From positions 23,289,881 through 23,337,380 of the forward strand of contig NC_068989.1 of assembly GCF_001194135.2 (NCBI RefSeq): 47,500 nucleotides of DNA, written 5' to 3'. The position numbers and the translations under genes are program-made. Source of the stretch: Octopus bimaculoides. Taxonomy: Eukaryota. This document shows, one piece after another, positions 6,136-47,384 of the stretch (within the stretch, counting starts at the first letter, position 1; every line of letters begins with the position of its first letter). The notes below the pieces were generated by a model. It saw nothing but the letters and a program-made list of their open reading frames with translations, did not search any database and was not told the DNA's origin.

Positions 6136-6179
6136 CCATCATGATTGGTTTAACATTAATTTTCCAATGCTCACATGGG

Positions 6180-6520
6180 CTGGACTAAATTTTTCTTGTG
6201 GTAGATTCTCTACAGCCAGATATCTTTCCTGTCACATGGTACCAGCATGAGTGCTTTTTATGTGGCACAAGCACCAGTGTTTTTGTATGTGGCACCAGCA
6301 TCAGTATCAAGCCTGCTGTGGCAGATGGGTCTTCTTGCGTACAACAAGGTGCCACATATCTCAGTCTTTTGTCATCTCCTTCGTAAGGTCCAATGTCTTG
6401 AGATCTGTCTTCAGTACTTTGTCCCATGTCTTCCTGGGTCTCCCTCTTCCAGAAGTTCCATCCACTTTAAGTGACTGGCATTTCTGTATGCAACTGTCTA
6501 CATCCATATGCAGTGAACAT
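6180..6520 (-). mobile_element. RTE LINE 3' end fragment
   Basis: Minus strand carries VDGTSGRGRPRKTWDKV..DL, the RTE C-terminal motif, followed by the 3' UTR. Confidence 0.7.
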
Positions 6521-6754
6521 TAATGGAGAATATATCTTTTGCTCATTTTTGAAGACTAATTTGAAATAGTAATGTCATCTTTTTGCACAGGCACAAGTTT
6601 GAAAAAGGGAGATTAATGGTAAGTTTAACTTATCAATCTAAACTTATCCATATAGTGGCCATTCACATTTTGGGAGCACCTTATAGCAGTTAGCTCGATC
6701 ATCTTTTCTACATAATCTGGATACATTGTATGTTTATTAATATTGTCGAGGATA

Positions 6755-6980
6755 AAGACAGTGAGCTGGAAGAATCATTAGTATGCTGGGCAAAATGTTC
6801 AGTGGCATTTCATCCATCCTTATGTTCTAAGTTCAAATTCCGCCAACGTCAACTTTTCCTTTCATCTTTTTATTCTTTCAGGTTTGATCAAATAAGTACC
6901 AGTTGAGCACTGGGGTCAATGTAATTGACTTATTCCTTCCCAGAATTGCTGGCCTTGTGCCAAAATTTGAAATTAATATT
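6755..6980 (+). mobile_element. tRNA-derived SINE (family B)
   Basis: gtgagctggaagaatc...gttcaaattccgcc...aataagtaccagttgagcactggggtc; other copies at 15633-15845 and 26795-26965. Confidence 0.8.
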
Positions 6981-6984
6981 GGTG

Positions 6985-8540: not shown

Positions 8541-8599
8541 TTAACAAAAACCAAAGTCTTAGTAGGAAAGCTGATAAATCACAAATCCCTTGAGGTAGA

Positions 8600-9490
8600 T
8601 GGTGCTGCTTGATATGAAGAAAAGGCACAGGTAGAAACTCAATAAGGTGCAGCAATATCAGAGGAAGGTTAACAGGGAAAATAGTTTTTGTGTGTGGCAG
8701 ATGTACAGGTACAATAAATGCAAGAAATGTACAGAAAATAGACTCCATCAAATGCCAGGTGGGACACCTAGAAGTAGTTAATAGCTTGCAATATCGAGGT
8801 GACAAAGTCAGCAGTGGAGGTGGATGCTCTGAGAGCTTAGCTACTACAATAAGAATAGGCTGGGTAAAGTTCAGGGATATTTTACCTTTGTTGGTAACAA
8901 AGGGCCTCTCCCTCAGAGAGAAAGGCAGAATGTATGATGCCTGTGTCTGCAGAGGTCATGCATAGGCTTGAAAGAAACGACACTAGTATGCTTCAATGGA
9001 TGTGCAAAGTCAGTGTGTATATACAACAGAGTGTAAGCTTCTTAAGAGAAAAATTAGGCATAAGAAGCATCAGATGTAGTGTGCAAGAGAGATGACTGTG
9101 CTGGTCATGTGATGCATATGACAATCTCTAACTGTGGAAGAGGTAGATCAAGGAAGACATGAGACGAGGTGGTGAAGCATGATCTTTGAATGTTGGGTTT
9201 CATGGAGGCAATGACAAGTGATCGAGATCTTTAGTGATTTACTGTGCTTGAGAAGACTCATCAAGTCAAGTGAATTTGTAGTTGTGGCCAGTGTCGGTGA
9301 CATATAAAAGCACCCTTGTTGCTAACATGAGCAAGGCACCCTCTACACTCTTGGAGTGGTTGGCATTAGGAAGGACATCCAGCTGTAGAAACTATGTAAA
9401 AACTCTCTGGCTAACCAGTTCCAATCAAACTGTCTAACCCATGCCAGCATGGAAAGCATATGCTAAATGATGATGATGATGATGATGATG
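8600..9490 (+). mobile_element. RTE LINE 3' portion running into the family C tail and (GAT)n
   Basis: LEVVNSLQYRGDKVSSGGGCSESL..RIGWVKFRDILPLL..KGLSLR.KGRMYDACV, then a 3' UTR matching repeat C. Confidence 0.85.
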
Positions 9491-9635
9491 TTGAAAAAGA
9501 CTGGGATTGATTCGTTTGATTAAAACCATTCAAGGGTTGTTTCAGCATGGTTGCAGTCCAATGACTGAAACAAGTAAAATTTAAAAACTAAAAGATAAAA
9601 AAAAGATAGATTATAATTATAAATCATTATAATTA

Positions 9636-9845
9636 TTATTTACATTATTTACATTATTTACATTTGACGGATATTTGTCCTCATCTTGTTTGTTGTTAAC
9701 ACAATATTTTGGCTGATAAACCCTCCAGCTTTCATCAGGTGTCTTGGGGAAATTTCGAACCTGGATTCTCATTCCTAAGGTATTTTTCGATGTTGTTGTT
9801 GTTGTTGTTGTCATCATCATCATCATCATCATCATTATTATTATT
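9636..9845 (-). mobile_element. Penelope-like terminal repeat with a decayed hammerhead, plus (AAC)n/(GAT)n/(AAT)n
   Basis: Inverted homologue of 10230-10420; the ribozyme GAAAC is changed to AAAAT. Confidence 0.65.
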
Positions 9846-12198: not shown

Positions 12199-15100
12199 CA
12201 ATAGGACATTTTTTATCGTTCATTGTATTGCATTCTTTATATATGTATGTCGGCAGTCGTTTCTACCATGCCTTTTCTCTTTATTTGACCTTTACCTGCC
12301 TGTAGATATATTTTCTATCTATTTTATCGGTATGTCTTTCTATATATTTATTCATTTTATCTCTGTTCTTTCTATTTGTATATTTTGTATTTCAAACCTG
12401 AAAGTATATTAGTAGAGACTGTAAAATATCAGCCGGTATGATTTCCGTTGGGACCCCTTTGATCATAGCACTCACCCCGAGTCTTAAAAACTATTAACTT
12501 GGTAGTGTGAAATATAAGGTATTCATGTGGTTGGGAGGCAAACTTCTTTACACAGCCTCTATGGGTGTCTGAAGAAAATTTGACATGTTTGTTTCTATGA
12601 GTTGAGAAAATCTTCCACATGTACCTCTTAGAGTGTTTGAAAAAAAAATCTGCCACATATCCCTTTGTGGGTGTCTGAAGAATATCGGTCACATCTTCCC
12701 CAGCAAAGGGTCAAATGAACAGAAGTACTGTATAACTTGTTGCCATAATGTAGTCATTGAAATACGTCTGCAACTGAACTGGTTCATGATACTAAAGGTA
12801 ACAAACCTTAAGATAGGTAGCATCTATAAAATTCAATTTTGGATGTCCAAAATAACACCTGTTGAACACAGGTTGAAGCTGAAATATATTTTACATGGAA
12901 CGAGGCACAGACTTACTTCAGACTCATTTCAATGGCATTGAATCTTTGCAGTCTTATTTACTGACTGAAATGAGAATGTGGGCAAAAAAGGCTTACATGA
13001 AAAAAAAAATTTTTTTTAGTATAATGAAACCTATTAACAGTAGCACCAACACTAGTAGTGAACTGACAACTGCTGGTGTTCCTTAAAAGTACCTAGTATA
13101 CCCTGTAAAGTTGTTGGTGTTAAGGGTATCCAGTAGTAGAAATCATGTCAAAGCTGATGCAGCCCTCTTGCTTGATGGATCTTGTTGAATCATCCATCTC
13201 ATGCTAGAACAGATAAAATTTAAATAATGATAACAACTGCATGTATAGATACCTAGTAAAATAAGCAATATTTGAATAGTCTTCCCCTATTTAAATATGG
13301 CTAAAACTGGCAGCCTTTTATAGTTTTCTCTCCAAAACTTCAAACTGTCCCCCAAACTAGGAAATGCTGAAAACTTTTAAAAATGTGAAGTTTACAAATG
13401 CCTTGAAAAGGTCATTCCAAGTGGTTCTTTAACCCATAAACTGCGATAAGCCACCTCAGTGGCCAACGCGACAGGCCACGGAAGTAGGGCATGATCTGAT
13501 CTAATCTTGACGTATAATGCATGCACACGATACCCTCTCACCCCAGAAACAGTGTAGCTAATCACAGAAGGTGTTAAGAAACACTGAGTATTTTTTTTCG
13601 AGTGATAGATCGATGTTGATCTTTACCCAAAATAGGCTCGGCAGTTCATGTTACATACAGCAAAATCCCAGCAGTGTATGGGTTAAAGCAACAATTCACA
13701 ACCTATACAAAGAATCTATTGTAAAAATGGGTAAGTTGTTGCTACAAACTTCATCATCATCATCATCGTCGTTTATCGTCTGCTTGATGATGATGATGAT
13801 GAAGTTTGTAGCAACAACTTGCCCATTGTCATAACCCGTCTTCATTTGGGGTCAAGTCTGGTTATATCTTCTTCACCCCTTATCCACCATTCACTGCATC
13901 CACCTTTGAACCCTATCTAATTTTTACAGGTGTCTCTGATCTACCCTCCCTTCACCCATTTCCCATCTCTTGTACTCTTGATATCCCTACCCTGTCCTGG
14001 TTCCTCTTCTCACTCCTGTTCATCTTGTTCCTTGCAGGTTCGTCACCATTATTTTTATTTCTTTCCAGCTCCACCTGATAATTTCCCAAATTCCCCAAAA
14101 CAGCTCCACCTGATAATTTCTACCTTTTAAAATGCAAGTTGTCTTCGCCATGTAGACCCCTGTACAGCAAGAAACCTGTTCTGATCTAGTCCCTTCTCCT
14201 GTATTTTAAATTCTCATCTCCTTACATATAAGGCCACCCCTGTTGGCTCATGGTCTTGCAAGCTACATTGGAACTTCACTAGTGGCCTGAAAATTGCACC
14301 CAGTGCATACTAAGTTGTTGGCATTGGGAAGGGCATCCAGCCATAGAAACCATGCCAAAGTAGCACAATGCAGTCCTTGAACCTGTCAAATTTTTCAACC
14401 CATACAAGCATGGAACAGGGACATTAAATAATGAAATCTTGACTAGAGAGTTGCAGTTTTCCATCAGATCAATCCCAACTGAACAGACCATGGATCAAAG
14501 ACATTCCAGCTATAACCATCCTCCCCTCCTTTATTTTTTGCTATCACTGGACCACATGCAATGGTCTTTTTGAAGATGAAAGATTTAACTGTTATTTCTA
14601 ACATGTTGAATGACTTGTTGGCTTGAGTGGAGCAAAGTCTACTTCTAATAACTTAACATCAGATGTTATTGACAACCTTATGTATAAGGTTTGGTAGTGT
14701 GAAGAAGCCTACTTTGCAGCCATGTGGTTTGGGGTTCATTGCTACTGCACAGCACTTTGGAGGGGTCTTCTATAGCCCTGTGCTGACCAAAGTCTTGTGA
14801 GTGGAATTGGTAGATGAAAACTGAAAGAATTCCAGTGTGTGTTTGTATATTTGTGGCTCCTTGACATTGCAGGATGGTTGTAAATGGGTGTCACTGTCAT
14901 ACAAGCAGTGTCATGGACAGAAACATGCCTGGCTATGGAGGAATATGACCTTGCTTATAAACAAGTGAAGGTTGACAACAGGAAAGGCATCTGACCATAG
15001 AAAAATCTGCCTCAATTAACTCTATCTTGACTTGGGCAATCATGGAAAAGTGCATGTTAAAACTGAAATTTTTCCTAAAATATTAAAGTATCAACAGAGC

Positions 15101-18100: not shown

Positions 18101-21100
18101 GGTGAGGCACAGTGTTGTGAAAGGCCAATAACATCTGTGAAAATATGGGGTGCAATGATGGGTTGCATGGTAGGTAAATTGCTTGGTTTGGATGGTCTGC
18201 CCTATGAGCTTTACTTTTTTATATGCTAGACTTGTTCAGAGACCTCTCAGCAAATATCTACTGCAACTGGCAGCAGAATGGGAGAATTCTTAGTTCTGTG
18301 AGTTGATGAGTGGTAGCACTGCTAAGAAAGGACTCAAAAAGGGGGATCAGACAGAAAATTTTAGGCCCATAACTCTGCTAAATGCAGATTCTAAAATTTT
18401 GGCCAAAGCATTAGTGAAGTTGGTGTATGACATTGATGAACTGACTGCCAATTTGCAAATATGTGCAATCCCAAGCAGAACTATCCATGTCATCCTCCAC
18501 CTCATGCAATGTATCATAGAGAGGGTGACTAAAGAACTGATCAATGTGACTCAAATGAAAGCCTTCAGTAGAATCAATTACTGTCTTAAAATAATGCAAG
18601 TCAACAGTAATCGTGAAACATCTATCTGATTTTGCTCTCTCATTCAGTGAAAGCAGAGTGCCCCTTAAGACATTCAGAGACTCAATAAGAATAACTGCAT
18701 CATCAGCAAAATCTTAGTCTGTAATCCTACTTCCACCGGTGAGTGCACCACAAATTCAATCAAGCCACCATTTGGCCAAATATCCATTCCATGCATGCAT
18801 TGAAAAGAGTGGGAGCCAAGACCTGACCCTCAGTGAGGAAGTGGAACCGCTTGGCCTTACAGTCAAGACAAAGATGCAATCCTTTGTTAGTTTCTTGGAC
18901 CACAACACCTTGTCTGTCTCTGTTGCAGCTGAGAATGTCGAAGTTGTTGACCACTTCACTTATATCAGCTGCGAGATTCATAGCAGCATCAGCTGAGTCT
19001 GAAGTCTTAAAAAGACTTGGATGTGCTGGTGCAGTTGTGAACTCATTGGACAAGGGTATTTGGGTGCTGCCAATATTTGGGCAGGAGGATAAAGGTTTTT
19101 ATGTCTCTGGTCCTCCCTGTCATGTTTTATAGTTGTGAACTTGGACATTGTCTAGTGCCTTGAGAGGCTGCCTGAATTCCTTTGGTACCAGGATGCTTTG
19201 TAGGATTATGAATTACCTTTGGTTGGATTTTGTGTCCAACCAATGACTCTGCTCAAAAACTGGGATGCCCCCTGTTACTTGTATGATTCAGGCCATGTTG
19301 CTTGATTTTCCAAGTTAGACCCTGGTTACTGTGTTCTCTTCACTAAAGATCCAGCTGGGTTGACAGCTTGTGTTGGTCGGCCGCATGGTCATGACAGATA
19401 AAGTATCTTGTGACGATGGGGACTGACCTAACAAGTCAACTGGGAGGATCTAGGAATATAGCAACATGCTGCAATGATACATGCCTCCACACCTGACCTG
19501 ATATGTTATCTGATTAGCTTATGTTGGAATAACTTATTTGCTTAATATTTCTAATTTCAGGACCATTTCTTTGATGAATATATGTTGGATGGACTTTCTA
19601 AAGATAATGATGAGATATTCTTAGAAATAAATCCTGATAATCTTCTAAAAGCACTAAAAACTGGTCAAAATGCCAAATGGATCAAAATTAAATTGACCAA
19701 AAAACAAGTTCCTTGTTTAACACTTGAAGTTGATTTGGTAAGTATTTTATATTTGGTTTCTAGTAAACCATTATCAGTTGTCATCATTGTTTCCACTGTT
19801 GCATGTGTGGTTAGCTTGCAGCATTTTGGCCATTTCTTTTGGTGTTCCTTTGTTTTCTTTTTACTTGTTTCAGTCATTAGACTACAGCCATGTTGGGGCA
19901 TTGCCTTGAAGAATTTTTTTTAGTTGAATGAATTGACCCCAGTACTTTTTTTAATTTTTTTTTTAAGCTTAACACTTATTCACACGCACGCACGCGATGG
20001 GCTTTTCTCAGTTTCTGTCTACCAAATCCACTCACAAGACTGGTTGGCCCAAGGCTATAGTAGAAGACACTTGCTCAAGGTCCCATGCAATGGGACTAAA
20101 CCCAGAACCACGAGGTTGGGAAGCAAGCTTCTTACCATACACCCATCTCTGCACCTATTGAAGATAACTTCTTCCACTAGTCACAGAGGTTCTTAAGAAA
20201 CATCATAGCTGCTGCCTTTCTTCCTCTAAATCATTAAAAAAATGCATTATGTTTATAAATTTAAATAAAGCCAATAAACTGGATAAAAAGAATAACAAAG
20301 TATATTTTATTTCTTCATTTTAGCCTACAGTTACTGGTCTGAGTCGCACTGTAGTCCATGATATACCAGTCTCAGTGTTAGCATTACGTCATTGGGTAGA
20401 CTATGATGAGCCAGATGTACCTGACTTCGATGTAAGTCCTGTCTGAATACATTTTACAAATAATGCTAGTTGATTCAACTAATATTGTTTCATATCCTAT
20501 ATGTAAGCATATTTTCACATGATTGTTTTTTTTTTCTATTGTCTCTGTCACTGTACATCACTCTCTCCCCTTCCCCAACTTTCCTTTTTCACATATCATC
20601 TTCATATTTTCTTACCTATCTGCAGGTTATTATACTGCTCTTCTCCATCCTCTTTGTGCTGCTACTTATAACCGCCTCTTTCCTGAGCTGCACCTGTACT
20701 TTCACCTTCATCCTGCTATACTGATACTTATGTTCCATTTACTACATTCACCTCGACACCTATCTCTAACCATCCATCACTCTCCTTTCACTATCTTTTG
20801 AACTTATCCACCCATCCTTACATAATTCACAGTAGCCATGTATCTCTTTTATAATAAGACCCCTGTGCCTATCCCTCTGTCATACTTGAGCCTCATTACT
20901 TGGCATAAAGTGCCACATAAAAAGGACTTGTGTTGGTCCCATGTTAAAAGCACCCACTGTAAAGTGGTTGGCATTAGGAAGGGCATCAAGCCATAGAAAT
21001 CAAACCAAATTAGACTGGGACCTGGTGCAGCTCTCCTGCTTGCCAGCTATGATCAAACTGTCCAACCCATGGCAGCATGGAAAACTGATGTTAAGTGATA

Positions 21101-21139: not shown

Positions 21140-24100
21140 NNNNNNNNNNNNNNNNNNNNNNNNNNNNNNNNNNNNNNNNNNNNNNNNNNNNNNNNNNNNN
21201 NNNNNNNNNNNNNNNNNNNNNNNNNNNNNNNNNNNNNNNNNNNNNNNNNNNNNNNNNNNNNNNNNNNNNNNNNNNNNNNNNNNNNNNNNNNNNNNNNNNN
21301 NNNNNNNNNNNNNNNNNNNNNNNNNNNNNNNNNNNNNNNNNNNNNNNNNNNNNNNNNNNNNNNNNNNNNNNNNNNNNNNNNNNNNNNNNNNNNNNNNNNN
21401 NNNNNNNNNNNNNNNNNNNNNNNNNNNNNNNNNNNNNNNNNNNNNNNNNNNNNNNNNNNNNNNNNNNNNNACATCTTGTGTCTATTAAGACCTAAGTTGT
21501 TCTCAACATGAAATATAGCAGCATACCAAAAACGTGAGCGGGCAAGACATTTAAAATCACCTAAAAAAGCATTATTAAACAGGAACCGGTTTCGGATTTA
21601 ACAAATTCTTACCATTTGTCTATTCCTCATCAGCCTGATTTGTAATGTAACCGCAATCATCAGAATCGTATACAGAGTTGCCCACCGCCATGGGTGCGCG
21701 TGCATATGGTTCTGCTAATTACAGCTTAATGGTGAAATTCAAAAGTCTTCGCTTTGGCGCGCTAATTCCAAGAATATATCTGCAGAGAATATTTACTGCG
21801 TCGTATATATTCAGTATGAGAACATGGGTATAATATTATTATGACTAATTACCTGATTTTATAATAATATTTTACCCATTACCCATTACCCATTATCCTG
21901 TTGATTGAACAATATATGGGATTATGTGGTTCCTATTTTGATGGGTAATTTTGTTTTTATGTACAGGTGTGGCTGTGTGGTTAAGAAGTTTGCTTCTCAA
22001 CCACAGGGTTCAGTCCCACTGTTTGGCATCGTGGACAACTGTCTTCAATAACCCCAAAACCAAAAGAAGCCCCTCGTATCATCATCATCATCATCGTCGT
22101 TTAACGTCCGTATGTGTATATAATTTTGTCTAGGCATGAAGTTATGAATACATGTCATAGACAGAAATGCACCTGGCATTCTCACTAGCTGCTGTTGTCG
22201 GAATTTTTCATCTCCCTTCGATATGTTGTGCTTTTTAACTCTGCTTCTTGATGAGATTTTCTTTGACAAAAACTACAACATTTTACCTGTACAATGTATA
22301 TCTGTTTAGTATGATACATAAATGTGGAGGTGCATGGCTTAATGGTCAGCTTTAATTGTAACATTGTGGTTTTGATTCCTGGACTGAATGATGCATTATG
22401 TTCTTGAGCAAAACTTTTCATTTCATATTACTCCAGTCCACTCAGCTGGCAAAAATGAGTAATCCTCTGACAAATTGATGTCCCATTCACCGGGGAATTT
22501 ATACACTGCACAATCCAGGAAAATGACGTTATGAGTCTATGGCTCTTAGGGTCTTTGATCCTTTTTTGACGATCTGTAAATGTTTATTTTACTTTAATAA
22601 TTGTTTTTTTTTTTTCTACATTCTATAGGTGAGTATAAATATGCCTGCATTGAAGCTTCTTCGCAATGTTGTTGACAAAATGAAGAGTCTTAGTAATTTT
22701 GTGGTGAGTATTGTTAAGCTTGATTGTATACCCCTTTTACAAAAGTTTCATGGCGTAACCAAACTTGGCAAAACATTTATCCATCATCATTTGATATCCG
22801 TTTTCTATGCTGGCATGGGTTGGATGGTTTGACTGAAAACTGGTAAGCTGGGGAGCTGCACCAGGTTCCAGATCTGATTTGGCATGGTTTCTACAGCTGG
22901 ATGCTCTTTCTGATGCCAACCACTCCAAGTGTGTAGGGGGTGGTTTTTATGTGCCAGTTGGGAAACATTGGTATTGGCCATGACTAAATCTTACTCAGCT
23001 TGACAGGTCTTCTCAAGCATGGTATCATCATACACAATAGATGATATTATGGTGTTGGACTACAGACTGTTGTCTATTCACCAGTTGCAATCTTGAACTC
23101 CTGAGCAGAGCACATCCGTCTGTATGTCCCAGTTTGTATGTAGACAATAAAGTAAAAAATTCACTTCTGTTTACTGATTAAATGGTTAGCTGCAGCAAAG
23201 GTATCCAGCTGTAAAAATACTTGCTCCAGCAAAATCCATTCAACTAGTGCAAGGCTGCAAAAGTGCAAACAGTTAAGAACTGTTTGCAGTCTGCTATTTC
23301 CGGTGCTAGTAAAATGAAACTCTATGAATTTAGCATTTCATGAGAGCAGGCATAGCCATGTGATTGAGGAGTTTGCTGCCCAACCATGTGATCTCAGGTT
23401 GTTTCACTGTGTGGTTCTTTGGGTAAGTGTCTTCTGTTATAGCCTGTACCAGCCAAAGGTTTGTGAGTGGATTTGGTAAGTGGAAGCTGAAAGAAGCCTA
23501 TTATTGTGTGTGTGTGTAGACATACATGTGGTCATGTCTTTTATGTGTACCCTTTTGATGTAATGATTGTAAACAAACAGCACAAGAAAAATGTCTGGCT
23601 ATGAGGAAATATTACCTTACTTGGAAGCAGGTATGAGTTGGCTGCGAGTAGAGTATCAAGCTGTAGATTTGCTTCAGTGTATTCTGTGACGAGGCAAGTG
23701 TGGAAAAGTAGACATTTAATGATGATGAAAGATGCTCCTCAGTAATTTTGTTATTGTAAGATTAATGATTGTTTTGTGAAGCTTAACCCTTTCGTTACCA
23801 AACTGCCCAAAGCCGCCCGAAAAAAATTTTGGTTCATGTGACCAAGCCGCCCAAAACCGCCCGTAATCACCTATTCATATTTAAATGAGAATATCTGAGC
23901 AAATCTCGTTAGTACATTCGTGAAAACACGTGATTATTTGTGTAAACAGTTCAGCTATAGTTTTGTACGACGATCAACGTGTTTTTTTAATTTTGTGAAT
24001 TTTGGGAGATTTTTTTCCAAATTTGTTCCTGTTGTGTTTTCAAAATTTGNNNNNNNNNNNNNNNNNNNNNNNNNNNNNNNNNNNNNNNNNNNNNNNNNNN

Positions 24101-26011
24101 NNNNNNNNNNNNNNNNNNNNNNNNNNNNNNNNNNNNNNNNNNNNNNNNNNNNNNNNNNNNNNNNNNNNNNNNNNNNNNNNNNNNNNNNNNNNNNNNNNNN
24201 NNNNNNNNNNNNNNNNNNNNNNNNNNNNNNNNNNNNNNNNNNNNNNNNNNNNNNNNNNNNNNNNNNNNNNNNNNNNNNNNNNNNNNNNNNNNNNNNNNNN
24301 NNNNNNNNNNNNNNNNNNNNNNNNNNNNNNNNNNNNNNNNNNNNNNNNNNNNNNNNNNNNNNNNNNNNNNNNNNNNNNNNNNNNNNNNNNNNNNNNNNNN
24401 NNNNNNNNNNNNNNNNNNNNNNNNNNNNNNNNNNNNNNNNNNNNNNNNNNNNNNNNNNNNNNNNNNNNNNNNNNNNNNNNNNNNNNNNNNNNNNNNNNNN
24501 NNNNNNNNNNNNNNNNNNNNNNNNNNNNNNNNNNNNNNNNNNNNNNNNNNNNNNNNNNNNNNNNNNNNNNNNNNNNNNNNNNNNNNNNNNNNNNNNNNNN
24601 NNNNNNNNNNNNNNNNNNNNNNNNNNNNNNNNNNNNNNNNNNNNNNNNNNNNNNNNNNNNNNNNNNNNNNNNNNNNNNNNNNNNNNNNNNNNNNNNNNNN
24701 NNNNNNNNNNNNNNNNNNNNNNNNNNNNNNNNNNNNNNNNNNNNNNNNNNNNNNNNNNNNNNNNNNNNNNNNNNNNNNNNNNNNNNNNNNNNNNNNNNNN
24801 NNNNNNNNNNNNNNNNNNNNNNNNNNNNNNNNNNNNNNNNNNNNNNNNNNNNNNNNNNNNNNNNNNNNNNNNNNNNNNNNNNNNNNNNNNNNNNNNNNNN
24901 NNNNNNNNNNNNNNNNNNNNNNNNNNNNNNNNNNNNNNNNNNNNNNATATTTTGTTGTATACCCAATTGAATATTAGCTAATAACCCATTTTCTATAGCG
25001 ATGTTTGAACAAAAATTTTAATAATTTTATATTTTGTTGAATTTACCTGTATTTACCTGTAATTAAAGTCACTTTGTGACAAAAATTTTGGTATAGAATT
25101 GGTTGAGAACCGTTCGTTAATTTATCTTCCAAAAATCACATTAATATGTTGATAAATAAAAAAGTTAGTTGTTTAACGAAACCAGCCTAAATTTATGATT
25201 ATGTTAGAAATTAATTGAAACACATAAGGGGTGTAATTTGGTTAGAAATATGGTAACGAAAGGGTTAAACTTAGAATGATGCAATGAATACACAAGTTAT
25301 TTGTCCATCCATATGATAACCCATTATATCTTGTGATATCAATATCCTAAAACCAAAGTGCCAGGTAAAAAGCATTGGTGTAACTGCTGGTACCTTGCAC
25401 ACACACTGGTGATGGTGCCATGTAATAAGTACTCTCTGTAAAGTGGTTGGCATTAGGAAGGGCATCCTAGAAACTAGAGACCAAACCAAAACAGAAACCA
25501 GCAAGGCCAGGAGCTGCACCAGTCTATCAAGCTGTCTGACCCTTACCAGTATGGAAAATGGATGTTGTGTGTTATTGACGATGATGTAATGACATGCATG
25601 TGAATTAGATTTAAATGAAAGAAAATTGTGCAATGTTAGCCTCACTCTTAGCCAGACATTCCTTGACCCAGAGACAACTTGCAGTTAAGATGGTTGGTGG
25701 TAGGTCTTCATGCAATGGCTGACCAGATTTTCTTAATTACAATGTTTTCTTCTTGCTGTATTCCATAACATTTATTCAAACTGCCATTTTGATCATTAGA
25801 CACAGCTGTGTTCATTTGTTCAATCAATCAGAATCTGACTTTATATATATATACATATATATATATATATCTATATCTTCTATAGCTATAGTATAGCTCG
25901 GTTTGTGTGTGTGTGTGTTGCATCTATAGAAATCTACACCTTACAAGATAGCAATCTGGGAATCGCACCAATGGATTCCTCATGGTCGAAAATGCCTGGA
26001 ATCAGCCATTT

Positions 26012-29000: not shown

Positions 29001-32000
29001 ATTAGCAATAAATTCCTGTATAGGCTGCATTTCTTTGGAAACCCTAAACTCTCCAAAATTATTTTCAGTGCCTTCGTTACAATGAGAAGTAAACATTAAA
29101 CTTGGCCACAATTTATGCCATCCATCTTTCAGTGTTGATGTTTTCAGGGACAAAACATTTTTGAAACCAATCTAATGTAATATCAGTGGTAACCCACCCC
29201 TTCTTGTTGGCACAGTAATAGACAGGAAACTGTGTCATTCCCTTGAAAGCCCTTAGATGTAAACTTTTCCTGATAACAAGCAACTTATTCGTAACATTAG
29301 AGCAGCACATTACTATGATGCGATCCTTTGAAGCTTTAAACCCCGATGGTGATTCTATATTCTCAGTTGTCAGATATCATTTTGGCGTACAGCTCCAAAA
29401 CAAGGCAGTCTCGTCAGCATTGTACACTTGTTCAGGACTTAAATGTTCATCACTAACTGACTTTGCAAATTCATCTACATATTCATTAGCTGCATCTTTG
29501 TCTATTAAATGCTTTTTCACTACACAATGCACGAAACTGTAAGCCATGTAGCAACTGGAAACGATGCAGCCAACCTTCTGAATATTCACACTTGTGTTGC
29601 AACCCCAGCTCTTCATGAAAAACTTTGGCTTGTTCCTTTAACGACTCACCAGAAATTTTCACACCTTCACTTACACGAAGATTGAACCAGGTTATGAGAA
29701 CTTGGTCCAGTTCCAAACTTTTTCCCTCTGTCATTGATTTCTTCACAAACATTTGCTTTTTTTGATCCACTGTCAGAGAAGAGCTGGAACAGTTTTTCCT
29801 TTTGTTTTTTAATATCATACACTGTTGAATAGCCAATGTCGTATGTTTCACAAATGGTTCACACAGACGCGCTGCTATTAAGTTTCTTTAGCATTTCCAC
29901 TTACTCTACTATCGACAATGCATGATGTTTACGTTTTACGCCACCTCTTTCTTTACTGAATCCATTATGGAGCTATACAGCAGCAAATAAATGATAAAAT
30001 GAGAAGGAATGAGCATCAAAACCTAAATGGCGCCTCCAGAAAACCGTGGCTTGCCAATACAGTATAGAGGAACCAGATTTTCGAATGTCAACTGTAACAA
30101 ACAAGTTAAGGGAGATAACTTGTTTACTTGATTTCTTGGAAGTCTTGTAATTTAATTTCTTAATTAAGCTATCCGAAGGTAACAGGTATTACAATAATAA
30201 AGATTTGAAAGGTCAGATTTATTCAGAAAATATTACCGTTATTAGAAGTTAATTTGTTTTACTTCTGGGATGATTCCAGTGTGTCAGTAAATTTATCTGG
30301 TTTAATCACGTTTTTCAATCATTTCTTGGAAAGTGCTAGGAAATTTCAGTAAAAAACATTTTTCCTTACTAAATTGATTTGTTGTTTTTAGTAAATTCTA
30401 AAGTACCACTATACTGAAAACATACTGAAAACAGTACAACTAATGCAACTTACTTTGACTTACAATATTCATACCCTATGCAACCAACCATTGATTGAAA
30501 GTTTGGTCTAAAACCAGGCTTAAAGAATGGTAAACTAATATAACTAGTGAAGTAGGTTGTTCCCTGTTTAGTCAGCTGTCTTGTTGCATGTTTACTCAAA
30601 CCTAGTTAATTATGGCTATGCAACAATGTAATTAATGTTTTCCCTGTGCATATGAGGAGGTGCTGAAAAGTTCCTGGCTTTGGGTAAAAGAATATACAGG
30701 AAGATCAGTTAATTGTGATTTTATTCAACATGTTCCCCTCTCAGATTCACAAACTTATTGCAACTGTCCTTCAGTTTTTCTAAGCCCTGTAATAGAACTC
30801 CGAAGGTTGGGTCTCCAACCAGGCCTTTCATGATAGCTTTAAAGCCAGGAACTTTTCAGCACCTTAGTTCAATTTAGTATCATCAGTCATTATCTGTTTT
30901 CCATATGGGCTTTGGATGGATGGCTTGACAGGAACTGGCAAGGCCAGGGGCTGCACTAGGTTCCATAGTCCATTTTGGCTTGGTTTCTACAGTTGGATGC
31001 CCTTCTTAATACCAATCACTTTACAGGGTGTACTGGTTACTTTTTACATGGCACCGGCACCCAAACCAGTGCTTTTTATGTGGTATCTTGTCTTTAGGAT
31101 CTCAATTGTTGTAGTGGACATGTCTTCTTGAGTGCAGCAGTGTGCTACAGTTCTCTGTCATCCTCATTGTAATGTTTTGAGATTGGCCTTCAGTATTTCA
31201 TCCCAGGTTTTCCCGGGACCTCCCTCTTCCACAACTTCCCTCCACTTATACATACCGTTACAGTTTATCATGTTTGCCTTGGGGTTTCATGACTTAAAAT
31301 GGCTTCATCTAGAAGGTGCCAGGAATCTAAATCCTGATTTCACAATGTGATACTTTAGCTTCTCGTTTCCTGGTATTAAGCCATCTCCCCCAATACCACA
31401 CCCTCTCATTTGAGGGGGTCTTGTCTTGCTAGTTGGTGATCTCACTAGTGCCATTGATGCATAAAAAGCACCCAGTGCACTGTAAAGTGTACCGGTATTA
31501 GAAAGGGCATCCAGCCATAGAGACCATGCCAAAGCAGACTGGAGTTTGGTGCAGTTTGCTGGTTTATCATCTCTTGAGTCATCCAGCCCATGCCAGCATG
31601 CTAAATAATGATCATGAGAAAGACATCGAAATTTGCATTTTCCTTATTTTTTCGAATACCTTCTTTACGTGTTCTATATGTTCATGTGATTCATTTTTTA
31701 TTAGGATATTGTCTAAATAGGCGATAGGGAAGTCATGTATTCATGGCTAATAAGTGTGAGCATTCTTCTTCTATTTGGATTTGTAGATATGCCTCTGAGA
31801 AGTCTAATTTTGAGAAGAATTTCCCTCCATTCAATTTTGCAAACACTTCCTCAGGATTCAGCAGTGGGTAGTTACATGAGATTAACCAATCATTGAACCC
31901 TGTTGAAAAATCTGCACAAATTCTTATTTTTCCTTTTTACGTAGACCATAAGTGCTGCCCAATCTTAGTGGTCCATCTTCTTGATTATTCCTAGGCTTTC

Positions 32001-35000
32001 AAGACTTTCGAGTTCATTATTTACTTGTTCTAGTGCCATGAACAGTACTCTCTCTTTATTTGTTTCAGTCATTTGACTGCGGCCATGCTGGAGCATCGCC
32101 TTTAGTCAAGCAAATCGACTCCGGGACTTATTCTTTGTAAGCCTAGTACTTATTCTATCGGTCTCTTTTTGCCGAACCACTAAGTGACGGGGACATAAAC
32201 GCACCAGCATCGATTGTCAAGCAATGCTAAAGAGACAAACACACACACACACACACATGCATATATATATATATGTATGTGTATACACATATATATGACG
32301 GGCTTCTTTCAGTTTCCGTCTCCCAAATCCACTCACATAGCTTTGGTCAGTCCTAGGCTATAGTAGAAGACAGTTGCCCAAGGTGCCACGCAGTGGGAAT
32401 GAACCCGGAACCATGTGGTTGGTAAGCAAGCTACTAACCACACAGCCACCCCTGCACCTTCCGTTTTAGCTTAAATACAGGTGTTGCACTATATTTTACT
32501 ACAATTTTTGTCTTTGTTTTTTGTGTAGCAGCCCAGTTTATCTGAGAAAACATCTGGAAATAAATGTTTTATTTTTTGTTTCAATCCCTCAGCTGCATTC
32601 GAACCTTCGACTGAACTGACTATATTCCTGCACAAAACACTAATAGGTGTATTCCACAATTTGAATAGTTCCATCCACCTGTATTGAATAGATTAACGGA
32701 ATTTTTTAATACATATACCTTTGCTGTTTTCATTTGGTCGTGAAATGTCACATTACACACAAAGTTGCCTACAAAATACAATCTTTTACCCGTAACACTG
32801 TGTGATACTTTTGTAGATTTACTTAATTTCGGCTTACCGATATACTTCGTTTCTTCATTCACAATGGTAATATCACTTCCAGTAACTAACTGCATTTTAC
32901 CTCTTGTATTTTCAATTTTCACATTTACGAATTTCCTCTTTGTCATATTACCATTTTCTTTCCATGACATCTTGTTTATTTTTTTTCCTTTGTTCCAACG
33001 TTTTGTCATCTTGGTTTTATAGTGTGCTTTTATGTGTCCAGTTTTTCCACAACAGAAACAGTCTTAAACGGGCAGTTTTTTCTCAGGTGTAGACCTTCAC
33101 ATGCAAAACATGGGTTTGTTTCTTGATTCTTGTCCTGTTTGTACTGTACTTTAGTATATACTTGCTTTCTATTCTGCCTGTTTCACACTTGTTTCACTTG
33201 TTAAATTTTCTGTCGTATCTTAAATTTACTATTCTTTCACATTCTTCTGACACTTGTAAGGTTTATAGCATGGTTTTGCTCCAGCTTAGTGAGAATTCTT
33301 GTTCTAACCTCTGCATCTTTTTCTGCAGTTAGTCCAAGTAAATATCAGCCACTTGAACATATCTGTTGTTAATTTGTCCAGTTAGAACTTTTCACATTTT
33401 AAGTTAACTCTGCCAGCATGTGTGATGTAGCCCTCCTTGTTCTTTTCTAGGTTCAAACATTTCCAGTGTGTATTGAACAAGCTTTCCTTGCTAAAAATAT
33501 TACACAGTATGTCTATTGTATTTTTAAAGTTTGTCAGAAGGTTTTTCAGGAGTACGTAATTGCTGTAACATCTATGTTCTCCTGCTGTCAGTTTTCTTAA
33601 GATTAGACGCGTTTTCATATTGTCCCAATCTTTGCGCTCTTTATTGAAGATCTGTTCGTATCTTCTATAGTACGCCTCGAAGGTAACTCCTTCGTCTGGT
33701 TCATACTTAAATTCCGTCATTGAGTTTGCAATAAAATCTGGCAAGAACATCTTTGCAGCATTTGTTTGACGACTTGATATTCATTAATTGCAGCATTTGT
33801 TGTTGTAATAGTAATTGTTGTTGCTCTTTCAGTTGTTGTTGTTGCTGTTTTTGCAACTTGAGCAAACTGGCTAACAATTCTTCCATTATTTTATGATTTT
33901 GTATACTGTAAAATTCGCACAAAGAACTTTTGTGAGTTTCATAACTCCTTGTGAGTTTGTTAATTCCTTGTCACCATTGTTGTAATCCTCTGTTGGACTG
34001 TTACAATGTCCACTCCTGTATAACAGTATAGTTAGTTAGGCAAGTAAGTCATGACTATGTATGATCAACTACTCGACTGCTTGACATCACAATATTTGTA
34101 ATGACTAGCACATACCACTTGTCATATGAGAGGGGTGTTCCATTATAACTATTATCCCCATAACAGTAACATATGAAATATATATATCCCTTGAATTGTA
34201 TGATGCTGTAGAGTTCTGAGGTGAAATCTTTTCATAGATGTATTAAAAGCACAGTGTATAGCGAAGTGAGGCAAACATCATCTCAGTAGTGACTCTTGAG
34301 AAAGCCAGACATGTTTCTTGGGGTTTCATCAGTGATATGGACCTACTTGTCACAAGCCTAAACAAAATTTATCCCTGTGATATTTAGGAAATTGAATAAT
34401 ACATCCACTGGTATTGTGAAAATCTTGCTGGGTTGTAGAGAAACTTGATATACATAATTGAAACATCGAGCAGCCCCATTTTATCGCAAACTGCATCTGT
34501 CATTCTCGTGTCATTGATGTGATGTTTGCTTCAATATGTATTTGTTTTAACACAAGTCTATGGAGAGATTTTATCTCAGACAGTTCTACAATATCATGCC
34601 TGTCAACACTATATATACATTTAGGAAGATACACAATGGCAATTTTAATTTAATGCTGTTTCACTTGCATTCACTAAATATTTTTACATTCTGTTTATTT
34701 TATCACGACTAATATTATTCCTTTCTCATAATAATCTGTGACTCCTCACAGATTATTATGAGAGTTTACTGAGCTATTCTATATATGATAATTTTTTTTA
34801 AATAGCACTTCATTTTTTTTTTTTTTAAATTTCTAGATCGTTTCTGCAAACTATGATGGTAAAATGAAGTTAACAGTGGAAACAGATGTAGCATCTGTTT
34901 GTACTTATTTCAGGGATTTGACAAACCCTAAATGGAGTAAGTAACCTTTATATTTTAAACTTCTTTTCCCTACCCCCATATTTTTTTCTTCTTTTTTTTT

Positions 35001-40989: not shown

Positions 40990-41550
40990 TTGAAATGTTG
41001 AGCATTTATTCCTTCATAATATTTGCATGGTAGTTCAGACACAATGAAAACTTTGAGTTCTGTAGGGTTGTTGTTTCTCCTTCATCTTGGTAGTTAAGCT
41101 TAGCCCATCATTGGTTATATGACTTTGTATGTTGATTCTTCTCTGAGGGGTCTTATTTTAAATAAGGGATTGAAGTTTGGTTCTCCATGTACTGTGGTAT
41201 TGCTTATGTCTTTCACAAAAAATCGTTTCAATGTTTTCATGTCCTTGTCATAACATTGGAAACGTACTGGTCTCTGAAAGGTTTATGATTACTCCAGTAA
41301 TTTGTAATTCTGGGTAATTTTCTTATACCCATAATAATATTTATGGCCAAAAATTCCCTTATTTCTTTTATGCTTGTGGTAAACTGCAAGCTATCTTTTT
41401 TTACAGTTTCACTTTATGTGTAACACTTGGTTTCCGCATTAATCGCTTCAAACAAGCTTACTGGAAAAATAAAAACTCATGGCTTTGACTCCTGGGAAAG
41501 TCTGTGAGTAGGTCCACTCTATTCAGAAAAATCCTTTACAAAAATAGTTT
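40990..41550 (-). mobile_element. piggyBac transposase fragment
   Basis: EIREFLAINIIMGIRKLPRITNYWS...SNVMTR and NFNPLFKIRPL motifs (DDE_Tnp_1_7 type), frameshifted. Confidence 0.8.
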
Positions 41551-41659
41551 TTAACTTCTTACTCCATTCAGGTATAGATTTGTTCTACCTGTTGCTATTG
41601 GAGTTCTCTTCAGAATTGCTGCTTTCTGTTTTGGATACAGAAATATTGGGTTCATTTTC

Positions 41660-41800
41660 ATACACCGCATGGAGAAAAGAAAGGTGTTTGTGTGGACTGA
41701 GGCATCATTGGGATCCACAAAGGTGACGCTGGTTGACAATGGAATGGTTTGGTAGGCTGTTATATGCTCTCCAGGAATCTGTGATAATCTTAGTGGTACC
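41660..41800 (-). mobile_element. Merlin / IS1595 (ISXO2-like) transposase fragment
   Basis: GTTKIITDSWRAYNSL..HSIVNH(frameshift)SVTFVDPNDASVHTNT. Confidence 0.75.
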
Positions 41801-42610
41801 TTGTATAGTAGAAACTTGTTTGAATAAGTCAGCAATTGAGTGAGCGATCATTGATTTCCCAGTGTTGGGTAATCCCTGCATAACCAAAAGATTTCTTTAG
41901 GGGGATTTCTTATTTAAGACATCCCATACAAATGTTACGAAAGTTGTTTCCAGAATAACTTGTGTCATCAGAATAGTTCTGAAAACCTTGAAAGAGTTGT
42001 TTTCATTCACGTATTGCTTATCATTATAAAAATCCCAGTCGATTTTTTTTTTTGAATTTCATTTTGAATGGTTCATTGAGTGTTTTCAGTTTTTCACACT
42101 CAAGAACTTTCTTCATCACGGTGTCGTGTTATGTCTGTTGAACCAGTAAGATTTCATGTCCTGCTCTGACCTAAATCTTTTTGAAGTGAAGATATATTGT
42201 AGGTAGTTAAATAGTGTGAGTGTAGTGCTGGCCTTCGATTTGAAGGTTGGTTCTTGATTTTCTTTATGTGGTGTTTCTTTGTTTTGTTCGTTATATGATT
42301 TCGGTAGGTAAGGTTGTTCGCACCAAGTTGAGAATTTTATAAGTAGTTGTCGAGGAGCCTGGCAAAAATAGTTTGCCATAGCTGAAGGAAATTTAACTCT
42401 CTGGCATTCAGTTATGTAACGGTGTTACTCGCCTTTTTATATAACGAGCGTATGTATTTCAATTGCTGATTTTAACCAGGTCTTGTGGAACTGTACCAAA
42501 TGATATGGAAATGGTTATATGTGTTCCACTCTTTCTTTGAGCAGTAGTGTGTTTCAGCCGGATGGTAGATGACAGTGGCCGTGTTTAATTCTATGAATAT
42601 TTTTAATTTT
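41800..42610 (-). pseudogene. Endogenous parvovirus NS1/Rep (HUH endonuclease plus SF3 helicase), disrupted
   Basis: HFHIIW at 42496-42513. DVLNKKSP*RNLLVMQGLPNTGKSMIAHSIA with Walker A at 41852-41875. A few stops and frameshifts. Confidence 0.78.
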
Positions 42611-42619
42611 TGATTACGA

Positions 42620-43146
42620 TTAAGTAAATATTTCGTTTTTGGAATTGGTTTGCAAGATCTTTTTTCAATTTCAGACAGGCAATCAATTTTTCTGACTTTT
42701 TTATATGTGGCGAATTTTGGTGGTAATTTTAAAGCATGCATCTCATTTGTATCTAATTGTACTGCACCATATATTCCAGAGGTGTTTTTGTTGTTGTTGT
42801 TGATGATGGTGGTATTGTCTTCCGGTGTCCTGGCGTCAAAGTCCTCTGGTAGTTTACATTCTGACATGACAATCCCGTTGATATTTTTTGGGTATTTGTA
42901 TTGATTCTTACCATTCTGGGCTCGTTGTTGCTGTTTCATCCACTTCAGTTTATTGTTGAAGTGTTTGTAACAGGCATGGTTAACCTGGTGGTATTCTTGT
43001 TGGATGGTTGTCATGAATTTGTCTCTTTCATATGGAGTAGTGATGGTTTTAAGTTCATGCAGTAGGACTCTCTTTCGTTTCTGATACTGGTTGATTTCTG
43101 TGTATATTTTCTTTTTGATGTGTAAGAAATATCTTTCTTTATTCAA
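42620..43146 (-). mobile_element. Penelope-like element, N-terminal ORF region (copy A)
   Basis: YGAVQLDTNEMHALKLPPKFATYKKV..DCLSEIEK resembles the PLE 'L.LGPKFA' motif upstream of RT. Confidence 0.6.
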
Positions 43147-43599
43147 CCTTTAGGTTAAATAATTAATTCCTCACATCAAACTTTAAGGAAAAATTTAAGA
43201 ATGGATAACGCAGTCTCTAAACCAGAAACATAACAATATTTATTTATGTAGTTATTCAAACAGCATGGATATTCGGCAGTTCTTGTCGGTCTATTCATAC
43301 AGCATTGGTTATTCGGCTGTTGGTCGTTTCATCACTTGTCCGCTGTCCCCATCACAAGTGTGTTGGGTCTCGAAGAGAGCGATACAAAACACGTCCTTCG
43401 CTCACAAAGTTGTCGACGCAAGAGGAAGATAAAACGCGGGAAAATGTTGAGAGAGTTGAACTACGCATGCGCATGGGACTCTTCCTGTGTTCCCTCGGAA
43501 CTATTCCCTGCGCATGCGTGGATGAAAACGCAGTAATGGCGACTGTATTTTGGCACCAAATGACGTCACTACAGATATTTTGTAACATCGTATGTTTTA

Positions 43600-43930
43600 G
43601 TTTTCTTTCTTGATGTTCTGTGAGTCCTAAATCGCTTGGCAGCTGAATTGATAGATTTTGTGTATAGTTTGGATGAGATGCATGTTTTAATGAAGTGGAG
43701 CTGTCTCAGCGTCTTGCTAGCTCGGCCAAAGCTGATTATATTTCGTTTTTGGAATTGGTTTGCAAGATTTTATTTCAATTTCAGACAGACAATATTTCTG
43801 ACCTTTTTATATGTGGCGAATTTTGGTGGTAATTTTAAAGCATGCATCTCACCTGTATCTAATTGTACTGCACCATATATTCCAGAGGTGTTGTTGATGG
43901 TGGTGGTATTGTCTTCCGGTGTCCTCTTCG
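43600..43930 (-). mobile_element. Penelope-like fragment (copy B)
   Basis: About 190-bp direct repeat of 42628-42831, followed by RASKTLRQLHFIKTCISSKLYTKSI. Confidence 0.55.
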
Positions 43931-44267
43931 AAGTTGCTACCGTGCCTGTTGACATACATGTCGTCGAAGAAAAGTGTTGCTTCGTCGTAGAGGAGACAGT
44001 CACAAGGAGGAGGGGGCTGTGTTGAGTCCGAAGGGAAAAGTTGTTCGTAAGGTGAAAATATAGCGCTGTTCCAGGTGGAGTCACGAGGGAGTGGATCCAT
44101 GGTGCAGAGCGATGCCAAAAACGGAGATGTTAGAGATCGCAAGGTGCCTATAACATTATCTTAAAATCGTTTTCTTGTATCCATGGATATATTAGCATAT
44201 ACAGTTTCTCATTTGCATTCTGAAATAAATGAAAAGAAATGGTTGTAGGTTTTTTAGTAATATTACT

Positions 44268-45086
44268 TTAACGCAGAGCTTGTCTGGTTTTACCAGTTCT
44301 GGTTGTTTCATAATTACTTATACCTTGCGGCCATTTACATAGATTTGTCTTAGCTGAATTACATATGACTGCCTTGTCTTTACCCCATGCCATCCATCCC
44401 ATGGTTAGAGGACTGCCTGACATGTATTGAAAATCTATTTCTGACTCATACGTTATTGTAATAACGAATGTTATTTGTGAGGGATTATTGGATGCAGCTG
44501 AAATAGGTAAAGCGTCTAGTGTGCAAATTGGACGAGGATTTGAAGGATTGATTCGAAATTGTGTTAAGTGTGGTCTGCCTGTATTTTCCTCCTGTGCGCC
44601 TTTGTCAACTGCCAAATCTGTACTCCAGCTGCCATCGTTAGTAGGAGCCCATATTGAATTTTTAGAGTATGTATTAACCTTGCATGGCAGGCCGTTATCT
44701 TGTTTTATTTTTGGTGGTTCATGTGTTGTTAAGAAAGCGTAATAACCCATAGCATTAAACCAACTTGGATTTCTATTGACTCATTTGTATGATGCTGTTT
44801 CTCCAGAGTATAGGTATTGCAATGCACCTGTATTGAAGTAAGATAGTAATTCTTCTGCATTTTGTTCTTTTTCCTCATTGCCTGGTAGTTCTCTTCCTTG
44901 CCAACCCCACCAGTCTTTCCTAAATAATCTGTTGCTGTGTATGTGTTGCAATTTACCTTCTCTAATTACTGGTACATTATGTGTCCAATTACTATTTAAG
45001 TGAGTGATATTGTAAGTTTGATTTGGATACCAAGCATATTTATTATCTACGTAATGTACTAACCATGGTCTGTCATTTTCTGATAG
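44268..45086 (-). pseudogene. Candidate parvoviral capsid (VP) gene fragment, about 272 codons with one in-frame TGA
   Basis: One frame is open from 45086 to 44268 except TGA at 44781-44783. The peptide is W/N/T/Y-rich with no TE motifs and lies near NS1 on the same strand. The family call comes from composition and context. Confidence 0.5.
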
Positions 45087-45189
45087 TCATGTAACTGTTG
45101 ATCCCTGCACAGATCCCAGTGTATCAGTTATCGGTATTATATTTGATATTTTGTAACCATGATTTAACTCTGAAATCTAGTACACTTAT

Positions 45190-45408: not shown

Positions 45409-45472
45409 TCCACTTCATTCATCTACAATGTCAGGGAGAGTCCACTTCATTCATCTACAATGTCAGGGAGAG
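45409..45472. repeat. Perfect 32-bp tandem duplication
   Basis: tccacttcattcatctacaatgtcagggagag x2. Confidence 0.95.
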
Positions 45473-45964: not shown

Positions 45965-46480
45965 TGGTGGAGGTGGTGTCTGTGAGAGTGGAAGTGTTTG
46001 TGGTATGAGAGGTGTGTCTGCGAATAATATAAGTGTTTCAGAAAAAGCTTTTTTTGCTCTGTCAATAGAGATACTCTTTTTTACCGTTAATGTCTAATGT
46101 AAACAGTTTAGGTGTACTCTTAAGAACATGATGGGGACCTGAGTAAGGCAGTGTGAGTGGTCCTTTGATGGAATCATTCTGTATGAATACATAAGTCCAT
46201 GTAGAAATGTTCGGAGGGACTGCAGAAGACAAAGACTTGTTGCGTGGAAGCATTGGTGGTAGGTCAGCGAAGAATGACCTGAGTTGTGTAATGTATGATG
46301 CAAGATCAGTGTTTGGTATGTCGGCAAGTGTCAACATTTGGTCAGGTAGCGCCAAAGTGGTGCCATACAAAAGTTCAGCAGAGGAGTAGCCTAGATCCTC
46401 CTTTACAGCTGATTGGCAACCCAGCAGGACAATGGAAAGAAATTCAGACCAGTGTTGAGGGTTGGGAGCGGCACAAATTG
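45965..46480 (-). mobile_element. Gypsy integrase C-terminal fragment
   Basis: WSEFLSIVLLG..SAVKEDLGYSSAELLYGTTL.LP...YVFIQNDSIKGPLTLPYSGPHHVL...K.FTLDING. Confidence 0.85.
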
Positions 46481-46769
46481 TGGAGTTAAATTTTCGTTAC
46501 TGACTAACTTAGTAAATTGTCAAATTTCTCAACTGCATCCTTGTCAGCTGATCACTTTTATCACATGGCATGAAACTGTAACCCATGTGGATCCTTGAAA
46601 TTCCACAGCCTTCACTATGATTGCACTTATATTCCAGTCTGAGTTCTTTATGGGATGTTTTTGCTTGTTCTTCATAAAGGTATAATAAAAAACGAAGAAG
46701 AAAGAAAACCAAACTGTTTAGAAATGACATGAGTGTGTTTATGCAGCAAGTAGCGCTGACAAATTGTAG

Positions 46770-47384
46770 CTAATGGTTGGTGCAGTGACCCCGGGAATTT
46801 GAATTTCCACTTGAAATTAGTGCTGAAGGGTTTCCCGAGAATTCAAGGACTCTATCGGCCATTGTGGTCACTTGGTCCACAGTGTTGGACTCAAATGCCG
46901 TCGCTAGAATTGTTTGTACGTGCGACGGTAGGCGAGAAAAGAAAATCTTGCGGAGAAGTGGAGCATCTGTTGACTCTCTGCTCAGATCTCGCAAATGGCG
47001 CAGAAATTCTGTGGGGGTCCTGTTCCCGAGCTGCTCGTCTGCCATCAGCTCATTGAATCGGCTGGTGGCAGACCTGGTGGTCCTGCGTAGGATCTCGTAT
47101 TTCACCTCGTCATATGTGGCGTCGTCTTTTAGAGATGTGATTAGGTCTTTAGACACTTTTGCAAGCGATGGAGGTAGATTGCAATAAAGCAACTTTAATC
47201 TCTTGGACAACGAGATGTCGTAGACCTGGAAATACGCCTCCAATTGAGCGAAATAGACATCGGTATCACCGATGAATGTGGGTAAACCATGCGACATGTC
47301 TACTGGGATGACTCTGTCAAGGTAGGAAAAGGGAATGGAGAGAACCAATGAAAACGAAGTCGTATGAAATATGTGAGAGGCCAA
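46770..47384 (-). mobile_element. Gypsy gag ORF (204 aa, open); the element probably continues past the window end
   Basis: LPTFIGDTDVYFAQLEAYF...YDEVKYEILRRT...RFNELMADEQLGNRTPTEFLRHLRDL...LRKIFFSRLPSHVQTIL. Confidence 0.85.

Follow-up and report, generated by a model that had tools for sequence, protein, structure and literature searches.

The question raised by this locus is whether a combination of motifs on the minus strand of a eukaryotic, transposon-rich stretch of 47,500 nucleotides (hereafter the window) marks the remains of a parvoviral replication initiator, and what has become of it. A first-pass annotation had read there an endogenous parvovirus NS1 of HUH plus SF3 architecture in a probable cephalopod genome. 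All the amino-acid strings which it quoted are present on that strand. HFHIIW (42496-42513, with HFH at 42513-42505) has the form of HUH nuclease motif II and sits at the end of a 224-aa ORF (42472-43146, minus strand). MANYFCQAP starts at 42379 and carries an A-N-Y (42368-42376, inside KFPSAMANYFCQAPR) with the candidate catalytic tyrosine of motif III; its frame differs from that of HFHIIW and is identical to that of GLPNTGKS (41852-41875), the candidate Walker A of an SF3 helicase. The distance of 213 codons from HUH to Walker A was also given correctly.

Taken by themselves, these motifs are weak evidence and prove little. Across its six frames the whole window has 12 occurrences of the pattern H-U-H-U-U-U, so that about 0.06-0.1 occurrences are expected 150-300 codons upstream of a P-loop on the same strand, and GxxxxGK[ST] was seen twice against about one expected. 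The numbers of HUH-like and Walker A patterns, considered alone, do not go beyond expectation, as would be the case if the motifs had met by chance in non-coding DNA. On sequence grounds the NS1 signal as a whole does exceed chance, judged by a profile match of about 100 residues and by homology to the NS1 proteins of the relatives described below.

At the level of profiles, the pieces were taken as they stand and the in-frame stop was written as X. About 100 residues up to Walker A matched the Pfam family PPV_E1_C with 26.5 bits (E 4e-6, exactly at the cut-off) and, over profile positions ~46-146 only, Parvo_NS1 (PF01057) with 24.4 bits against a cut-off of 20. The PPV_E1_C score falls to 25.0 and 22.0 bits when the fragment is placed in longer contexts. 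The 33-residue P-loop alone gave 16 bits to both families and equally to generic P-loop families, which leaves about 8-10 bits specific to this branch of SF3 helicases; the 53 residues upstream of the P-loop, alone, had no Pfam match. In PDB the sole matches of the fragment were papillomavirus E1 chains, and these were weak (E 0.08). The HUH piece matched no nuclease family in Pfam, PHROGs or PDB, giving there only noise such as antibody chains. Whole-frame translations were also compared with Pfam, at reduced sensitivity. No relatives came up when the helicase piece, the 224-aa ORF and the 302-aa VP (capsid) stretch were used in word-indexed protein searches, nor in scans of IMG/VR. The annotation had named PF01057 as the profile to look for, and the fragment does pass its cut-off, with PPV_E1_C scoring about equally. 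Its claim of a specifically parvoviral Walker A context finds no support in the fragment alone, since papillomavirus E1 scores as well.

Such scores could also come from a helicase fragment of a non-parvoviral HUH/SF3 or E1-type replicon, for example a papillomavirus- or adomavirus-like E1 or the Rep of a CRESS-DNA virus. Papillomavirus E1 (PF00519) is likewise an SF3 helicase, and E1 chains can be aligned to the fragment around its P-loop (P-x-x-N-L-L ... G-x-P-N-T-G-K-S-M). The HUH-tyrosine spacing of about 47 residues is short and resembles that of CRESS Reps, in which this spacing is short. However, papillomavirus E1 is not known to have a catalytic HUH, and the fragment's score for it only equals the cut-off. 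The choice between these origins was decided by the second gene of the locus and by full-length relatives.

The second gene is a VP remnant. An intact 160-aa ORF (44268-44750, minus strand) lies about 1.7 kb upstream of the NS1 stretch and was the only suitable stop-free piece for an exhaustive protein search, which returned 15 matches. One of them, a protein of 579 aa (P0008), has at its N-terminus the PLA2 domain of parvoviral VP1 (PF08398, E 1e-11), and it is the C-terminus of P0008 that pairs with the window ORF. The closest VP relative (P0001, 57% identity) comes from SRR3401912, an octopus metatranscriptome (PMC11662614), and another relative (P0005) is the Octopus vulgaris hypothetical protein CAI9722211.1; the closest relatives derive from octopus data. 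Bacterial Big_12 matches of the same ORF (P0006, P0010, P0012) were treated as spurious repeats. The remnant, supported by tblastn with the VP of locus L001, occupies 44268-45170 on the minus strand, as the C-terminal ~300 codons of one broken gene. It corresponds to residues 264-565 of the 579-aa relative, and the natural stop is kept. With this stop included, the stretch has 3 stops in 301 codons, versus 17 expected. None of the Pfam capsid models matched the remnant, and the AF2 model of the relative P0008 has a pLDDT of 31.7. The PLA2 domain is seen in the relatives only, the window copy being without that part.

Related loci were found in several data sets: L001 in a 1.14-Mb contig of the ENA assembly ERZ21939214, L002 in the octopus metatranscriptome SRR3401912, L003 in Octopus vulgaris OX597817.1, L005 in the ENA assembly ERZ25073254, and L006-L009 in the Logan runs ERR4009593, ERR4009535, ERR4031017 and ERR4030425. 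Locus L001 is a tandem array with a period of ~3.87 kb and units 89% identical to each other. Each unit consists of VP, 128 bp, NS1 and a spacer with a near-perfect hairpin of ~100 nt (fold z -14). The reading frames of this array are unbroken, with 475-539 aa for NS1 and 579-580 aa for VP. The L006-L009 sequences are near-identical contigs of ~3.1 kb from the four runs, in which VP and NS1 each occupy two frames; they may represent an endogenous element that is expressed or present in many samples, or one host species that was sampled repeatedly.

Both window genes are homologous to these families, at 30-57% amino-acid identity. In tblastn, the L001 NS1 matches window positions 41792-42627 with E 3e-19, and the match reaches 42720 with the N-terminal ORF x323; the L001 VP matches 44295-45158 in a single frame with E 7e-38. 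Overall, the NS1 fragment matches several loci with E 1e-15 to 1e-22, its pieces are 40-50% identical to closer relatives than L001, namely L006-L009 and L002, and L007 is colinear with the window across VP and NS1. The reading as an endogenous NS1 of parvoviral type in a cephalopod-type genome is borne out. The NS1 remnant (41792-42831, minus strand), delimited by tblastn with the L001 NS1 and by Pfam, is one broken gene. It begins in the N-terminal region, takes in the HUH nuclease part and the linker, and breaks off shortly after the SF3 Walker A. It covers approximately residues 23/73-375 of a 539-aa relative.

Alignment to the relatives also settles the three motifs. The HUH motif is aligned as HFH or HYH, in the context W..Y.H.H, in all eight NS1 N-termini. 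Counted by lineage, these amount to about four independent cases, as L001 supplies three paralogues and L006-L008 hardly differ from one another. The NY tyrosine, within KFP..NY....PR, is kept in 7/7 relatives that cover the region and stands there 46-48 residues downstream of HUH. Walker A, on which the Pfam and PDB matches are centred, pairs with G[VL]P[ND][ST]GKS in all relatives that cover it. For example, NHFHIIWYSSTRPG of the window corresponds to EHFHLTFLSKCRPG, KFPSAMANYFCQAPR to KFPGSWANYLTQEPR, and GLPNTGKS to GVPNSGKS. Since these are conserved columns in the relatives, the annotation had assigned motif 2, motif 3 and Walker A correctly. With homology of this level, conserved motif columns and a colinear VP, chance co-occurrence is refuted and its probability is negligible.

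The full-length relatives answer the question on the helicase family as well. The L001 NS1 scores 46-56 bits with Parvo_NS1 (E 3e-12 to 4e-15) versus 30 bits with PPV_E1_C, a preference of 16-25 bits, and the Parvo_NS1 match in relatives spans the region from Walker A to motif C, reaching profile position 237. In PDB the L001 NS1 is matched best by AAV Rep40/Rep68 and by a parvoviral NS1 (E 1e-6), and the N-terminus of the L001 VP by the AAV capsid protein VP1. Papillomavirus E1 has L1/L2 as neighbours, whereas in the window a VP takes that place, with relatives that bear the parvoviral PLA2 and match AAV VP1. We therefore consider a non-parvoviral replicon very unlikely as the source. The preference for Parvo_NS1 over E1 derives from the scores of these relatives and not from the window fragment alone.

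The locus is then, with high probability, an endogenous viral element that is dead. Part of a parvovirus genome would have been integrated into the germ line of an octopod-like cephalopod, where it decayed by frame changes, stops and truncations. On the minus strand (41792-45170) it contains the 3' three-fifths of VP, a disturbed junction, and NS1 from near its start to past Walker A. The NS1 of Parvoviridae nicks the replication origin and unwinds DNA for rolling-hairpin replication. In the source virus, the HUH/tyrosine part would have made the nick and the SF3 helicase would have done the unwinding.

It is useful to compare the order of the genes in the window with that in the relatives. 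In monosense parvoviruses NS comes first and VP follows. Here, all related loci in which both genes are present have VP first and NS1 after it on the same strand, with 40-130 bp between them: L001 (region 1-9734), L002, L005 (8001-10055) and L006-L008. The window likewise has VP and then NS1. In L001 the only hairpin of each unit lies after NS1. This layout of the relatives suggests a capsid-first genome; otherwise, head-to-tail junctions would have been sampled in all cases. Literature searches on reversed parvoviral gene order returned nothing relevant. Terminal hairpins were not found in the window, and the only palindrome there is an imperfect one, whose arms of 30 nt are complementary at 73% (fold z -2.5). 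One can go further and propose an undescribed cephalopod or mollusc lineage with the native arrangement hairpin-VP-40-130 bp-NS1-hairpin, together with a 224-aa ORF that would be a host-captured chimeric gene. We regard this combined proposal as rather unlikely.

How much damage has accumulated in the window copy? Along the homology path, NS1 changes frame three times. Its in-frame stops number at least two in the parts that align, or five on a straight reading of the long frame. Between HUH and Walker A it has 213 codons versus 238-241 in the relatives, or about 25 fewer. Its 3' ~165 codons are missing, and the homology stops at residue 375 of the 539-aa relative, right after Walker A. Walker B, B' and motif C (arginine finger region) were found in no frame downstream or elsewhere in the window. 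Their absence is a truncation of the window copy and not a property of the lineage. With HUH and tyrosine in different frames, the frame changes and stops, and the loss of Walker B, motif C and the arginine finger, the window element should be unable to encode a working nuclease-helicase. The VP copy has two in-frame stops and no frame change, and lacks its 5' ~263 codons, the PLA2 region included. The distance from the VP stop to HUH is 1.3-1.45 kb longer in the window than in L001 or L007.

These breaks and truncations in both genes do not agree with the proposal of few lesions and a fairly recent integration, which is also countered by a disturbance of ~1.1 kb at the 5' end of NS1. The integration was probably not recent. 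The CpG observed/expected ratio is 0.75-1.27 over 42000-44200 versus 0.35 for the window, which would fit either a younger age than that of the surrounding repeats or an absence of germ-line methylation.

The disturbance includes a direct duplication. The 5' end of NS1 (42628-42831) is present a second time as an isolated copy at 43738-43925 on the minus strand, 1.1 kb apart, with ~93% identity plus two indels and sharp borders. No homology was found further upstream of this 204-bp duplicate. It may have arisen by an insertion with a long duplication of its flank or from two integrated fragments, and the divergence of ~7% between the copies indicates that time has passed since the rearrangement. 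The 'LKLPPKF' region, for which a retroelement origin had been considered, is the NS1 5' end present in both copies, and that idea was dropped.

Between the two copies lies a segment of 906 bp (42832-43737, minus strand) with no homology to any relative. It is promoter-like, with a CpG observed/expected ratio of 1.05-1.27, and contains TGACGTCA, two GCGCATGCGC in an imperfect palindrome (43456-43526), a CCAAT and a TATA-like box, the promoter motifs being called by eye. The open 224-aa ORF, the longest real ORF in the window, begins in this segment. Its first 105 codons have no homologue and are followed by the NS1 N-terminus to just past HUH.

This arrangement raises the question of whether part of the locus is an exapted or still expressed host gene, in which the promoter-like segment would drive the 224-aa ORF. 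The product would join a helical N-terminus of 105 residues to the first half of the NS1 nuclease, with HUH and no tyrosine, and could act by binding DNA or by interference. Just 3 of 5000 shuffles leave the first 105 codons open, CRE, NRF1-like, CCAAT and TATA-like motifs with a CpG ratio above 1 stand directly upstream, and related, equally broken copies occur in an octopus RNA data set. The open 5' extension and the length of the ORF beyond chance indicate that a part of the locus may be, or recently was, constrained. Against such a gene, no homologue of the ORF was found among 5.8 billion proteins, and the Pfam matches of its non-NS1 part are all below threshold, the best being Mt_ATP-synt_B with 18.6 bits (cut-off 21.7). 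Moreover, the ORF begins with TTG, its first ATG lies well inside, and it stops 10 residues past HUH, in the middle of the fold. Exaptation is therefore improbable, and a decayed viral fragment remains the preferred reading for the whole locus.

The flanks of the element are of host type. The virus-derived stretch is contiguous with host sequence, with TE fragments on both sides, a Hus1 exon and, throughout 1-39472, repeats of the O. vulgaris type with 80-93% identity. Thirty-one intervals within 1-39472 match, with 70-93% identity, short repeats that flank an Octopus vulgaris locus, and the locus L004 carries the same repeat family as the window. Together with the octopus data from which the closest relatives derive, this gives good support to an octopod source. 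Downstream of the NS1 truncation lies a fragment of a piggyBac-type transposase (41242-41464, minus strand; DDE_Tnp_1_7, profile positions 10-79). Upstream of the truncated VP there are remnants of an LTR retroelement (46100-47384, minus strand), gag-like (DUF7041) and integrase-C-terminus-like, the latter recognized by eye only and with no Pfam match. The alternative would be contamination or misassembly, by which reads of an exogenous virus were joined to host sequence, and the window does contain two runs of N and is thus a scaffold. Yet the nearest gap is more than 17 kb from the element, both genes are truncated and broken, a duplication, a stretch of non-viral DNA and TE fragments alternate with them, and relatives are embedded elsewhere in long host contigs (1.14 Mb and 176.7 Mb). 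An artefact of this kind is extremely unlikely.

Several smaller features of the surroundings were recorded. The N runs (scaffold gaps) are at 21140-21470 and 24050-24946, and a (TA)n-type microsatellite adjoins the first of them. Hus1 is a host checkpoint-clamp gene, and its exon-like match (19582-19750, plus strand; PF04005, E 1e-12, profile positions 67-117) is ~22 kb from the element. Other TE remnants on the minus strand are at 7090-8333, 29486-29851 and 33382-33750; the TE types of the window include LINE reverse transcriptase (RVT_1), a Tc5/pogo HTH domain, and gag-like DUF7083 and DUF7041. Just past the NS1 truncation, at 41465-41835 (minus strand), there are a 94-aa ORF and, in one frame, a low number of stops (2 in 111 codons); nothing matched this stretch. 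An exact 32-bp tandem duplication (45409-45472) is located between the VP remnant and the LTR-element remnants. In L001 a piggyBac-type fragment (12377-12583) also follows NS1. A link between the viral elements and piggyBac in the two loci is unsupported: the fragments belong to different parts of the profile and no homology of the flanks was detected, so coincidence is probable.

If the element is a parvoviral fossil, then we can ask how it relates to the systems already described. The NS1/Rep proteins of Parvoviridae, such as AAV Rep40/Rep68, share with it the N-terminal nuclease with HUH and tyrosine, followed by the SF3 helicase, but the window copy differs in being frame-broken and in ending just after Walker A. 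L001 has unbroken frames in a tandem array with a hairpin of ~100 nt per unit, while the window has one truncated, broken copy and no strong hairpin. EVEs derived from IHHNV in crustaceans (PMC12287923) and densovirus NS1 EVEs in flatworms (PMC13055364) also consist of fragmentary, rearranged NS1/VP sequences among host repeats, but their host phylum and viral lineage differ from those of the window. The subfamily affinity of the relatives is only hinted at by their best solved matches, AAV Rep and AAV VP1, and by the presence of PLA2, which shrimp hamaparvovirus-type viruses do not have (PMC11357303).

Parvovirus-related sequences in molluscs were reported by François et al. 2016 (PMC5013282). 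The supplement of that paper includes an Octopus bimaculoides WGS hit, and the protein KOF81493 is in its NS1 alignment. Over 40 residues around Walker A, the row of KOF81493, machine-read and trimmed, has 55% identity with the window. It is likewise an NS1-like sequence in a cephalopod genome, but its locus differs from that of the window, and the VP-NS1 arrangement is not described in that work. We found no paper specifically on parvoviral EVEs of cephalopods. The suggestion that the element may record an unsampled mollusc parvovirus cannot be kept in view of that 2016 sequence and of the relatives in an octopus metatranscriptome, the O. vulgaris genome and two ENA assemblies.

Parvoviral fossils are thus already known from animals, including an octopus, and the window adds another locus to a little-described cephalopod record. 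Such fossils date and map the associations of viruses with their hosts. Considered alone, the copy in the window is a dead EVE of the ordinary sort; what is notable is that VP always stands before NS1 in the relatives and that the NS1 remnant has an open, promoter-like extension at its 5' end. The relatives point to a lineage with both genes and the hairpin preserved in other assemblies.

One of the related loci shows a different composition. In L003 (7686-20441, at ~168.36 Mb in OX597817.1) there are at least six VP-like pieces and no NS1. This cluster contains two unbroken PLA2-bearing frames of 536 aa, located 2993 bp apart, which differ by 1 nt in 1611. So small a difference indicates either that a tandem duplication took place very recently or that the assembly contains the sequence twice by error.
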